Sequence record: PV261925.1
Strand: one strand, 5' to 3'
DNA: 64,000 nucleotides
Shown: positions 13,413 to 25,865 of the stretch, one piece after another
How the letters are laid out: the number at the start of each line of letters is the position of its first letter
How positions within the stretch are numbered: the stretch's first letter is position 1
The notes under the pieces: generated by a model
Databases searched by the model: none
What the model was told of the DNA's origin: nothing
What the model saw: only the letters and a program-made list of their open reading frames with translations
Made by a program: the position numbers and the translations under genes

Positions 13413-13515
13413 GATGATTGCCGTGGTTACACTATAGCGGACCTTTGGAGGTGAGTAATTTTGAAGTCCTCAGAGTGTTACAGATAAGTGATACTGATTT
13501 GACACGATTGGGGGG

Positions 13516-14215: not shown

Positions 14216-14270
14216 GTGATTGTGTGTCTTATACTATAGTGGACGTTTGAAGGTGAGTAACTTTGTAGAG

Positions 14271-15984: not shown

Positions 15985-16143
15985 TCAGTTACCATTGAGA
16001 AAATCATGTAATGCTTCCAAATACTCTTCTTTGGTCTCAAATGTGCGACCATAGATTGTCTTTGGAAATTCGCCAAGTTCGGCGGGTTTGTTGACAGGAT
16101 CTTTGCCCTGTGACTTGATTTGATCAGTGTAAGTGTTTCTCAT
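15985..16143 (-). CDS. Small hypothetical protein (52 aa)
   Basis: MRNTYTDQIKSQGKDPVNKPAELGEFPKTIYGRTFETKEEYLEALHDFLNGN; ATG immediately follows repeat copy 4. Confidence 0.65.
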   Translation of the reverse strand: MRNTYTDQIKSQGKDPVNKPAELGEFPKTIYGRTFETKEEYLEALHDFLNGN

Positions 16144-16178
16144 ACTATAGTGGACCTTTCGAGGTGAGTAATTCTGTG

Positions 16179-16970: not shown

Positions 16971-17019
16971 GTGGTTTAGTGGTTCTTACACTATAGTGGA
17001 CATTTGGAGGTGAGTAATT

Positions 17020-17515: not shown

Positions 17516-17626
17516 GTGGCCTTACATTGTATCAAGGTAACCACACCAAAACATGATACAAATGCCACACATTATGGGCCTTACATGAGTGTTGTAACCA
17601 CCACAGAAATTACACTCAATGCCCAT
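17516..17626 (-). ncRNA. Tandem pair of structured hairpins (GUAAG internal-loop scaffold), candidate ncRNA
   Basis: Unit B 17574-17626: ATGGGC-AT-TGAGTGT-19nt-ACACTCA-TGTAAG-GCCCAT. Unit A 17516-17568: GTGGC-AT-TTGTATCA-19nt-TGATACAA-TGTAAG-GCCAC. Stem sequences differ but pairing is kept. Confidence 0.65.
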
Positions 17627-18564: not shown

Positions 18565-18614
18565 AATGATTCAGTGGTTACACTATAGTGGACATTTCGA
18601 GGTGAGTAATTCTG

Positions 18615-19865: not shown

Positions 19866-19882
19866 AGCTTTGTGTGGTTACA

Positions 19883-20026
19883 CTATTGTGGACCTTTGGA
19901 GGTGAGTAATTCTGAAGACCGACGATTGATGGCGGCTACTTCTACACTACTACAAGGAATCAGAACCTTTTGATTTACCCACACAATCTTGCGAGTGTCA
20001 ATATCTGATGCGATGTTGTAAGTCAT
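19883..20026 (-). CDS. Small ORF (47 aa) reading through repeat copy 8
   Basis: MTYNIASDIDTRKIVWVNQKVLIPCSSVEVAAINRRSSELLTSKGPQ; ATGA overlap with the upstream gene. Confidence 0.5.
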   Translation of the reverse strand: MTYNIASDIDTRKIVWVNQKVLIPCSSVEVAAINRRSSELLTSKGPQ

Positions 20027-22207: not shown

Positions 22208-22257
22208 AGAAGTGTGGTCTCTACACTATAGGGGACATTTGGAGGTGAGTAATTCTG

Positions 22258-22461
22258 TCACCTCTTCTTTTTCTTGAGTTTGTTAATCAATGTCATCGCA
22301 GATTGTCTGTTACGACATACTTTAACCACCACACCATTGTGAACAACCACAAGTTTAGTTGTTGAACCAACCAGTGGAATTGCAGCCAGATAACCATCAC
22401 CCACAATGATAGGTAATGTTCCTGGTTTACAATCAAGGATGTGTGAGTTTGTGTAATGCAT
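22258..22461 (-). CDS. Hypothetical protein
   Basis: ORF track; stop abuts repeat copy 10. Confidence 0.7.
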   Translation of the reverse strand: MHYTNSHILDCKPGTLPIIVGDGYLAAIPLVGSTTKLVVVHNGVVVKVCRNRQSAMTLINKLKKKKR

Positions 22462-22915
22462 TTAGATATACTTGGTGGGCTTCTTCAATAGTATCATATA
22501 TCCCCAAATATTCAGTTTTACCTTCATGTGCAATACGAGAGTAATATCTACCACTATGTGCGGTCGATACACCTCTGACACCTAATTCATTATTGTTTCT
22601 TACTTTAGTATTGTAATTATTCTGTGTTTGGTCAACTGCTCGTAAGTTTTCTATTCTGTTATTACTTTTGTTTCTATCAATATGGTCTATTTGTTGTTCC
22701 TGCTCTAAGTCACCATAATGATACTGATACACCAATCTGTGCTTTAAATATATCTTCTTATCCACAGATATTTGATAATATCCAGTGTGATGTTTAGTCC
22801 CTGCAATAGAACCTGCAGGTTGTCTTCCCCTACATTTTTTGTAGATAAGTTCACCATCTTGGTAGGCGAAAAGTTCCTGTAACCTACCCTGTGAAGGGAG
22901 TTGATAATTTCTCAT
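22433..22915 (-). CDS. HNH homing endonuclease with C-terminal AP2 DNA-binding domain
   Basis: YLKHRLVY...IDHIDRNKSNNRIENLR (HNH_3) and GVRGVS..GRYYSRI..YLGIYDTIEEA (AP2). Confidence 0.9.
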   Translation of the reverse strand: MRNYQLPSQGRLQELFAYQDGELIYKKCRGRQPAGSIAGTKHHTGYYQISVDKKIYLKHRLVYQYHYGDLEQEQQIDHIDRNKSNNRIENLRAVDQTQNNYNTKVRNNNELGVRGVSTAHSGRYYSRIAHEGKTEYLGIYDTIEEAHQVYLNALHKLTHP

Positions 22916-23010
22916 GTGTGTCTTGGCGATGACATTACTATTTAGAATTTTATCATAATGTGGGACTTACGTCAATTTACCCGCCAAGACACACTGACTG
23001 CCCACATTAT
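22916..23010 (-). promoter_or_regulatory. Structured leader (GUAAG scaffold hairpin E1 + late promoter + loop-complementary RBS region) of the HNH gene
   Basis: ATAATGTGGG/CCCACATTAT stem; GTCA/TGAC inner stem; loop GTGTGTCTTGGCG (22982-22994) is the exact complement of the 13 nt before the ATG (22916-22928); TAAATA at 22939-22944. Confidence 0.75.
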
Positions 23011-25113: not shown

Positions 25114-25164
25114 AATATGGTGTGGTCTCGTACTATAGATGACCTTTCAAGGTGAGTAATTCTG

Positions 25165-25617
25165 TCAGATCACATGTATGCTCTCTATATGTGACACTGG
25201 TGAAGATTTACAGTAGAACTGTATATTTTTGTTGTATTTGGTTCTTCTTACAATTCTCTTCAATGCGTTGTAGTCGGTGTCATTATCTCTGGCCCATTTA
25301 GATAATTGATGACATTCAACCACATCACCGTTTCTAAACCTAATTCTATATGTCTTTGCATTAGGGTTGTTATTCAACCCTTGTTCTACAAACTGTTTCT
25401 TATCTGTAAAAACATTGATACGTCCTAACACCCAACCGTCAGGTATTTCGTCTTCAAATACCATCTTATGTTCAAGTCCGTTATTTACCCATACAGACCC
25501 ACGAACATACGACACACGGGCGTCATACACAGGTGTTAGTTCTTCTTCAGTCAGTGTAATTACTGACGGTCCATCACATTCAAACGCGCGATTAAGACCT
25601 TCACAGTTCCAGTCCAT
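25165..25617 (-). CDS. Homing-endonuclease-derived DNA-binding protein, no evident catalytic domain
   Basis: WVNNG..HK..IPDGWVLGR and NPNAKTYRI..LSKWARDN resemble endonuclease C-terminal DNA-binding modules; no GIY-YIG or HNH motif seen. Confidence 0.6.
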   Translation of the reverse strand: MDWNCEGLNRAFECDGPSVITLTEEELTPVYDARVSYVRGSVWVNNGLEHKMVFEDEIPDGWVLGRINVFTDKKQFVEQGLNNNPNAKTYRIRFRNGDVVECHQLSKWARDNDTDYNALKRIVRRTKYNKNIQFYCKSSPVSHIESIHVI

Positions 25618-25625
25618 TCTTCTAT

Positions 25626-25705
25626 TGACAGGGGTAATTATATTTATACCATAAAATGGGTCTTACGTCAACCTAACACCCCTGCCATGTTGACCGCCCA
25701 ATATT
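25626..25705 (-). promoter_or_regulatory. Structured leader (GUAAG scaffold hairpin E2 + late promoter TATAAATA)
   Basis: TGGG-CG-GTCAAC-16nt-GTTGAC-GTAAGA-CCCA; loop TGGCAGGGGT pairs with ACCCCTGTCA (25626-25635); TATAAATA at 25641-25648. Confidence 0.75.
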
Positions 25706-25865
25706 ATTGAACAGGAGTTTGTCTTGAAACTCGTTTGATTACATCTTTGGTAATCTCCTGTTTCATTTCTTCCTTTTCTCTTTCCTGTTCTTTCTTGTCT
25801 CTTTCAGCATCGATCTTAGCCTGAGCCTGTTGTGCCTTTGACTGAAATTGATTGTAGTTATTCAT
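25704..25865 (-). CDS. Small coiled-coil protein (53 aa)
   Basis: MNNYNQFQSKAQQAQAKIDAERDKKEQEREKEEMKQEITKDVIKRVSRQTPVQ. Confidence 0.65.
   Translation of the reverse strand: MNNYNQFQSKAQQAQAKIDAERDKKEQEREKEEMKQEITKDVIKRVSRQTPVQ

Follow-up and report, generated by a model that had tools for sequence, protein, structure and literature searches.

A hairpin leader whose loop is complementary to the start region of mobile endonuclease cassettes in a T4-like cyanophage: a putative cis-acting translational insulator

A short leader, built from a sequence-conserved hairpin, a late-type promoter motif and a segment complementary to the hairpin loop, precedes two inserted genes in a 64,000-nt stretch of phage DNA (record PV261925.1, the whole of which is referred to as the window). 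We consider it probable that this element, as the 5′ leader of a mobile cassette with an endonuclease gene, is a cis-acting translational insulator, by which RNA reading through from upstream would stay silent and RNA started at the promoter within the cassette would be active. The anatomy of the element, the covariation of its paired segments, its association with endonuclease genes and its position at cassette boundaries have been observed directly. The window aligns colinearly, at 100% identity, with Synechococcus phage RB11-B, which is a T4-like cyanomyovirus and has S-B05, RN05-S and S-B43 as near relatives.

The minus strand carries every gene in the region around the two elements. The hairpin, TGGGCRGTCA-(20 nt)-TGACGTAAGWCCCA, has been found in two copies in the window, both on the minus strand, as element A before an HNH gene and as element B before an ORF of 150 aa; the 14-mer TGACGTAAGWCCCA of the 3′ arm has two perfect matches in the window, one at each of these elements. 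A first-pass annotation made from the sequence had described the scaffold as common to both genes, with 36 nt between the outer arms, and had placed both copies right after the AATAA of an upstream stop codon; inspection of the sequence has confirmed the scaffold, the separation from TGGG to CCCA and the position after the AATAA of the stop codon. The parts of element B and its cassette are as follows.

25657..25700, minus strand: scaffold hairpin B (sequence; covariance model, E 1e-14; stem covariation over 41 copies)
25700..25691, minus strand: 5′ arm of hairpin B, TGGGCGGTCA
25690..25671, minus strand: 20-nt loop of hairpin B, ACATGGCAGGGGTGTTAGGT
25678..25687, minus strand: antisense segment in loop B, TGGCAGGGGT (duplex with the leader, −19.7 kcal/mol)
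25670..25657, minus strand: 3′ arm of hairpin B, TGACGTAAGACCCA
25641..25648, minus strand: T4-type late-promoter motif TATAAATA, between hairpin B and the target
25626..25635, minus strand: 5′ leader segment targeted by loop B, ACCCCTGTCA, with a spacer of 8 nt up to the ATG
25165..25617, minus strand: 150-aa ORF, identified from homologs and alignments as the DNA-binding half of a GIY-YIG (Seg-like) homing endonuclease
25131..25159, minus strand: early-promoter-like repeat, 3′ boundary of cassette B (empty-site comparison, RN05-S and S-B05)

Within leader B, the 3′ arm is separated by ttttatgg from TATAAATA, which is followed by taatt, the target and the spacer atagaaga up to the ATG (25617) of the 150-aa ORF. 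Loop segment TGGCAGGGGT and target ACCCCTGTCA pair over an ungapped 10 bp including one G-U, exactly as had been read earlier, and the motif noted between loop and target is indeed present there; what had been overlooked is that TATAAATA is a putative late promoter, which would give the whole arrangement its logic. A Lys/Glu-rich ORF of 53 aa (25704-25865, minus strand) sits between a 51-aa ORF and leader B, its start overlapping the upstream stop (ATGA) and its stop preceding hairpin B. It has been seen in RB11-B and is absent from S-B05, RN05-S and a contig termed L028, in all of which the leader or promoter directly follows the 51-aa ORF. Element A shows the same layout.

22961..23004, minus strand: scaffold hairpin A, upstream of the HNH gene (sequence; covariance model, E 3e-16)
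23004..22995, minus strand: 5′ arm of hairpin A, TGGGCAGTCA
22994..22982, minus strand: antisense segment in loop A, GTGTGTCTTGGCG
22974..22961, minus strand: 3′ arm of hairpin A, TGACGTAAGTCCCA
22945..22939, minus strand: late-type motif CTAAATA of leader A, between hairpin A and the target
22928..22916, minus strand: target A, CGCCAAGACACAC, abutting the ATG at 22915
22435..22915, minus strand: HNH_3 homing endonuclease gene, 160 aa (Pfam HNH_3, 4e-17; PHROG 99, 1e-54)

The loop of hairpin A reads GTGTGTCTTGGCGGGTAAAT, and its segment GTGTGTCTTGGCG is fully complementary to the 13 nt adjoining the ATG at 22915, which gives a helix of 13 perfect bp. The minimum-free-energy fold of leader A has a z-score of −4.0, and leader B alone has not folded better than its shuffles (z = −1.25). 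A reading of the hairpins as intrinsic terminators has been tried and rejected, no terminator having been called at 22961-23004 or 25657-25700, where the tails are CCCACATTAT and CCCATTTTAT. At its 3′ end, the HNH gene donates a new ATG (22462..22460, minus strand) to the downstream gene, whose N-terminus after the insertion is MHYTNSH.. in place of MFTNSH.. (22440-22470, minus strand).

A scan of the window at 20-30 kb against Rfam 15, at E up to 10, has given no match at either element, and BLAST of both leaders against cultured phages has matched solely RB11-B and S-B05, the element being too short for BLAST to retrieve further copies. An exact-pattern scan of IMG/VR has yielded 31 contigs, and a motif-blind, protein-based retrieval with GIY-YIG homologs has brought up a variant scaffold, for which a follow-up scan was carried out; scans and protein retrieval combined have provided 41 distinct scaffold sequences from viral metagenome contigs. 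All 41 share one order of upstream stop codon, hairpin, NTAAATA, loop-complementary target and ATG, with 0-10 nt (median 3) from the promoter motif to the start of the target. The pairing of loop and leader, on which the earlier proposal depended, has been found in 41/41 leaders.

The loops recur as two classes, class I with ..GTCTTGGCGG.. and class II with ..GCAGGGG.. or ..GCGGGGG.., i.e., ..G(C/T)(A/G)GGGG..; the target ends at the ATG in class I and 6-9 nt before it in class II, to which leader B belongs. The loop of element B had been described as entirely unlike that of element A, and the two sequences do differ, but they represent two recurrent classes and are not unique to each copy. 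On the window, a covariance model derived from the 41 copies has recovered elements A and B with the E values given above, the next match following at E 0.03, and every match of the model has been located ~90 nt upstream of an ORF. Applied to 260 kb of GIY-YIG loci, it has given seven matches, all ~90 nt before the ATG of an endonuclease gene and none elsewhere. A pattern scan with the 5′ outer arm freed has returned ~75 chance matches and one true new copy, the full anatomy has been seen in none among the 120 matches listed from a pattern scan of bacterial and archaeal genomes, and the scaffold sequence has not been found in the searchable literature.

The stems of the scaffold show two-sided changes at 5 of the 10 pairs in the 41 copies. 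Its inner stem has changed from GUCA/UGAC to GCAA/UUGC in 17 copies, a variant first met in the motif-blind retrieval, and its outer pairs are U-A, G-C or C-G, with GGAGG/CCUCC once. Altogether, 95.9% of the scaffold cells are paired, compared with 27-51% when the partner is slid; parts of both arms were fixed by the search patterns, and the invariance of the arms at these places is not evidence. Between loop and target, 24 distinct helices of 7-16 bp have been counted, which comprise 270 positions with four non-Watson-Crick combinations, three of these being G-U. Compensated differences have been found within both loop classes (GTCTTGGCGG/CCGCCAAGAC vs GTCTTGCCGG/CCGGCAAGAC in class I, GCAGGGG/CCCCTGC vs GCGGGGG/CCCCCGC in class II), so that the earlier suggestion of a joint change of loop and target holds in each of them. 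Cognate duplexes of loop and leader have a mean energy of −22.7 kcal/mol; with shuffled loops the value is −9.6 ± 3.0, and with loops taken from the other class it is −9.4. Judged from these sequence comparisons, the base pairing of the scaffold and that of loop and target are both under selection.

Complementarity of this kind might also arise at the level of DNA, if the inverted repeat of loop and target were an operator flanking the promoter and bound by the DNA-binding domain of the endonuclease. Such autorepression is known from I-TevI, which represses its own late promoter via an operator resembling its homing site (PMC2988022), and the 150-aa ORF, which keeps the DNA-binding module alone, would suit it. 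However, the two loop classes precede unrelated proteins (HNH, GIY-YIG and others), their sequence is free to vary as long as complementarity holds, and G-U, a combination that pairs in RNA and not in DNA, accounts for three of the four imperfect positions; we regard an operator as very improbable. At the RNA level, hairpin and loop/target helix together constitute a pseudoknot with 13-16 bp formed in a loop of 20-24 nt, and the inner stem may have to open for a helix of this length. When folding is restricted to nested structures, the long-range helix has been predicted in place of the scaffold.

An additional feature of the scaffold is its internal loop, C-R opposite GUAAG-N, which is invariant in the 41 copies, partly as a product of the search patterns used for collecting them, and which is flanked on both sides by stems that vary with compensation. 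This internal loop has no role in the insulator model. It has been met again (GGC-A ... UGUAAG-G-CC) with different, longer inner stems in two tandem hairpins at 17517-17567 and 17576-17624 (minus strand), the loops of which are similar to one another, GTGGTTAC. Homology to RN05-S and S-B05 stops directly after the second of these hairpins, beyond which RB11-B has an ORF of 155 aa, whereas in RN05-S the early-promoter repeat follows directly; the gene downstream is not an endonuclease. A generic search of the window for hairpins with a GUAAG internal loop has remained at chance level apart from elements A and B and this tandem pair.

With an invariant internal loop in mind, the scaffold could be taken for a site of protein recognition or processing, i.e., a cut of the RNase III/E type or the binding of a phage or host RNA-binding protein, in which the internal loop is recognised and the loop/target helix extends the duplex or positions a cut between the upstream mRNA and that of the endonuclease. 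Constancy of this loop between compensated stems, its recurrence with other stems in both hairpins at 17517-17624 and the reported effect of RNase E processing on the expression of T4 seg genes (PMC2988022) all agree with a processing site; it is nevertheless quite unlikely, as the helices are short (4-6 bp each), Rfam offers no match, no candidate protein has been identified and the constancy itself comes in part from the search patterns. A related reading sees the scaffold as a structured RNA module that is recognised by a phage or host factor and acts as a natural, reprogrammable 'presenter', bringing an antisense loop of variable sequence to a start region of choice. This reading is conceivable because the internal loop is kept while the stems co-vary and because it recurs with other stems at another cassette boundary, and we rate it as unlikely. 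If true, it would provide mobile genes with context-independent, possibly factor-gated expression, and the module might also define the recombination boundary of the cassette.

The insulator reading draws further on the genes that follow the leader. An ORF lies immediately downstream in 41/41 copies, and the endonucleases of the GIY-YIG or HNH kind among these ORFs number at least 30, ~21 being GIY-YIG proteins (YYTYAYLREDGTPYYIGKG.., often with NUMOD3) and nine HNH-type. Two others have weak, sub-threshold matches of the I-HmuI type of DNA-binding module, with one NUMOD-like motif, and ~6 belong to nuclease-less families related to the 150-aa ORF. The three ORFs without a family match come from S-B05 and from loci L019 and L248; the L248 product is GIY-YIG-like by eye, and that of S-B05 has the N-terminal motif of the nuclease-less families. 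Most downstream ORFs that are neither GIY-YIG nor HNH are members of nuclease-less families having a short N-terminal motif in common with the 150-aa ORF, and two could be assigned to no family. The first-pass annotation had proposed a portable module travelling with selfish endonuclease genes, and this is borne out by the 41 copies and the genes behind them, among which GIY-YIG, HNH and NUMOD3 have all been encountered downstream of the model matches. In several of the nuclease-less leader ORFs, a short acidic N-terminal motif (MDWNCEGLNxxFxCDG / MDPFESLKxFVCxDD / MEDVFASLREMEWDD) has been seen joined to varied C-terminal modules, its carriers being L002:4372-4863 (S-B05), P0009, P0015, L005:8986-9429, L222:3606-4013 and L196:3567-3872.

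Mobility of the whole unit is visible in the relatives. RN05-S is devoid of both cassettes; at its empty site A, the stop codon of the helicase gene overlaps the ATG of the next gene, which is the original ATG of the gene now behind the HNH insertion, and at its empty site B, the 51-aa ORF is directly followed by the early-promoter-like repeat of the DUF6267 gene. Each insert in the window starts at the hairpin, a few bases from the upstream stop, and cassette B spans from the upstream stop codon to the early-promoter-like repeat at 25131..25159. The comparison with empty sites that had been suggested for the relatives is clean in RN05-S, with the cassettes beginning at the hairpin. S-B05 carries an identical leader B at the same site before a different ORF of 163 aa, the divergence setting in after codon 2, and contig L028 has a class II leader (GCGGGGG loop variant) at this very site before an intact 215-aa GIY-YIG gene.

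These boundaries bring up a composite of the PeSL type, known from T4-like phages (PMC2839356, PMC4122927), in which a terminator or 3′-end hairpin of the upstream gene would be combined with a promoter, the conserved sequence would supply homology for cassette exchange and the pairing of loop and leader would be secondary. Such a composite would be in line with the exact position of the hairpin at the 5′ boundary, with the occurrence of closely similar leaders before different ORFs (the loop sequences agree fully between the window and S-B05, as they do between L028 and L032), with the tandem hairpins at 17517-17624 lying likewise at a cassette boundary and with a true terminator hairpin at the equivalent position in most homologous genes. 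It is also favoured by a sigma-70-like TTGACG-N17-TAnAAT with a TG extended −10 in 21 of the 23 GTCA-type copies, the −35 being inside the stem. Yet in the variant scaffold the −35-like hexamer has become TTGCGT with the pairing preserved, a terminator scan has been blank at both hairpins, the 3′ tail in class I is weakly T-rich, two occurrences in 64 kb are not dense, and 24 compensated loop/target helices would be left unexplained. We therefore hold the PeSL-type reading to be doubtful.

The protein behind leader B deserves separate consideration. A Pfam search of the 150-aa ORF has given no match; among the PHROGs, one carrying the annotation HNH endonuclease is matched at its C-terminus by residues 36-71. 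Over residues ~30-150 (~117 aa aligned), the ORF shares 60-74% identity with the C-terminal half of GIY-YIG proteins of 215-223 aa (P0010-P0014), the ~95-aa GIY-YIG domain of which is absent from the 150-aa ORF in the alignment, its place being taken by an N-terminal peptide of ~25 aa, MDWNCEGLNRAFECDG... The same C-terminal module has also been found fused to HNH domains (P0034, P0121), and larger proteins contain its WxNNG..IPxGWxxGR unit in 3-11 repeats. There are many nuclease-less homologs of 140-165 aa; for the three with DNA sequence, a dN/dS of 0.14-0.21 has been obtained, which speaks for purifying selection and therefore for a protein in use, and for nothing beyond that. An AlphaFold (AF2) model of the ORF is locally confident (pLDDT 80, pTM 0.45), and a fold search with it against the PDB has given no significant match, so that of the structural check proposed earlier the model stood and a fold assignment did not follow. 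I-HmuI, considered as a structural match at E 0.38, has not been accepted as evidence.

Accordingly, the earlier description as an apparently nuclease-less endonuclease derivative agrees with the alignments, and homology supports a nuclease-less, DNA-binding-only descendant of a GIY-YIG endonuclease that is under purifying selection. Its suggested domestication as a regulator is one possibility; the protein might also shield its target site from related enzymes of co-infecting phages, or be the partner of a nuclease supplied in trans. A nuclease-less descendant selected at the place where L028 has an intact enzyme offers a tractable case for the fate of endonuclease DNA-binding domains after loss of the nuclease.

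As to the transcription of the cassettes, a 29-nt repeat, TTACTCACCTyNAAAkGTCCrCTATAGTr, has been found in eight copies at 13-25 kb on the minus strand (0 expected by chance), each located after a stop codon (..TGACAGAA) and ~15-20 nt before a small ORF.

13430-13458, 14232-14260, 16143-16171 and 16989-17017, minus strand: copies of the 29-nt repeat
18581-18609, 19881-19909, 22224-22252 and 25131-25159, minus strand: further copies of the 29-nt repeat

With its T4-like form ATTACT-N17-TATAGT, the repeat is probably the early promoter of RB11-B, and because of this form the cassettes probably reside in early transcription units. Late promoters have been described as NATAAATA in the cyanomyovirus S-PM2, as TATAAATA in T4 and as CTAAATA in Aeh1 (PMC2984593, PMC1524935); in the window, 19 of the 20 occurrences of ATAAATA and 4/4 of CTAAATA fall on the coding strand. 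In leader B, TATAAATA doubles as the −10 of a possible sigma-70-like promoter, TTGACG-N17-TATAAA, the −35 of which lies at 25671..25666 in the 3′ arm. This sigma-70-like form differs in sequence from the phage's own early-promoter-like repeat. If active, a promoter in the 3′ arm would add early expression, and the cassette would not be late-only, which recalls the idea of 'overlapping early and late promoters' in cyanomyoviruses (PMC2984593).

In the mechanism that we propose for the insulator, the cassette would lie inside an early transcription unit and be read through from the upstream gene. On this read-through RNA, the conserved hairpin would fold first and present the antisense segment in its loop, with which the leader ~45 nt further on would pair over 7-16 bp once transcribed. 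The helix, reaching the AUG or stopping 6-9 nt short of it, would close the ribosome landing site, and consequently the gene would be silent. RNA started from within, at the late-type promoter (NATAAATA) between hairpin and target and, in many copies, also at the sigma-70-like promoter over the 3′ arm, would contain the target and lack the antisense, and would therefore be translated. In this way, the cassette would carry its own timing and expression level to any landing site. Transcription start sites, the repression itself and its timing are what we infer from the arrangement. The sequestered segment contains no Shine-Dalgarno sequence, and the helix in leader B leaves 8 nt between itself and the AUG, so that in class II the start region would be blocked less directly than in T4.

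The order of antisense, promoter and start region extends beyond the scaffold leaders. Among 74 GIY-YIG upstream regions in the motif-blind set, 47 have a strong duplex of antisense and start region spanning a TAAATA motif, so that this logic is general in the GIY-YIG gene family. Seven of the 47 are of the scaffold type with the antisense in the loop, and 40 have the antisense 5′ of a terminator hairpin; the first-pass annotation had overlooked that most homologous GIY-YIG genes have this other leader type with the same logic. In the second type (loci L111-L182; e.g., L111:1376-1500, L117, L123, L130), the order is (A/C)TAAATA-n4-antisense, a G+C-rich terminator hairpin, TATAAATA-n4-target and ATG. 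A late-promoter-like motif thus also precedes the antisense there, and for this reason a short, terminated antisense RNA made late is a possibility.

Homing endonuclease genes have to be expressed without harming the genome they have invaded. The leader would meet this demand as a self-contained expression controller of one marine phage element lineage, working at any insertion site. With a scaffold that stays constant, an antisense loop that varies and a target matched to this loop, it may be viewed as a natural analogue of engineered cis-repressed riboregulators. Being well supported by covariation, the module is a candidate for RNA family databases and could serve to flag mobile cassettes in cyanophage genomes.

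Among the closest known systems are the endonuclease genes of T4-type phages. I-TevI, I-TevII, I-TevIII, segB and the Aeh1 mobE have a hairpin with an embedded late promoter that hides the ribosome-binding site on long transcripts; late transcription begins within this structure, and its RNA is translated (PMC2988022). Our leaders share with them the order of antisense, promoter motif, start region and endonuclease gene, a late-promoter motif (TATAAATA/CTAAATA) between the complementary segments, an upstream sequence complementary to the start region and a homing endonuclease as the regulated gene; an RNA structure including the initiation region is present as the 7-16 bp loop/leader helix with its compensatory changes. 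By this analogy, which had been overlooked in the earlier reading, the arrangement is a structural variant of the T4-type mechanism. Unlike the simple hairpins over a Shine-Dalgarno sequence in T4-type systems, the putatively inhibitory segment here resides in the loop of a separate conserved hairpin, with formation of a pseudoknot and without a Shine-Dalgarno sequence. Moreover, one scaffold serves endonuclease families that are unrelated to each other, and its 3′ arm may form part of a sigma-70-like promoter.

In the 'fractured genes' of marine metagenomes, Dassa et al. (2009) have reported a hairpin upstream of the start of free-standing endonuclease genes in 15/16 loci, ten of them with TATAAATA, and two conserved motifs complementary to each other on marine phage-like contigs (PMC2677866). 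By their description, those hairpins are nested, like the terminator-type leaders in 40/74 homologs, and are set apart from the scaffold leaders in this respect. PeSLs comprise a stem-loop and a sigma-70-like promoter (TTGACA-N17-TATAAT) before a small ORF, at insertion or replacement boundaries between close relatives (PMC2839356, PMC4122927). The scaffold leaders resemble such cassettes as a unit of stem-loop and putative promoter at indel boundaries (PMC4122927), given that RN05-S is without the cassettes and S-B05 has another ORF behind leader B. In contrast, a genome contains many PeSLs, in which the stem-loop precedes the −35 and a Shine-Dalgarno sequence stands at the end, and pairing of loop and leader has not been reported for them; here, the covariance model finds two copies in 64 kb plus one weak relative, the −35-like hexamer falls within the stem, and there is in addition a late-promoter motif together with an antisense loop.

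At the protein level, the C-terminal ~120 aa of the 150-aa ORF are homologous to the DNA-binding half of Seg-type GIY-YIG enzymes, one of which (in L028) occupies the same site behind a leader of the same class; unlike these enzymes, the ORF has the ~25-aa N-terminal peptide instead of a GIY-YIG domain. The regulatory logic is already known. New are a scaffold of conserved sequence that serves endonuclease families unrelated to each other, the location of the antisense segment within a hairpin loop, the two interchangeable loop/target classes and a hairpin that coincides exactly with the boundary of the cassette.
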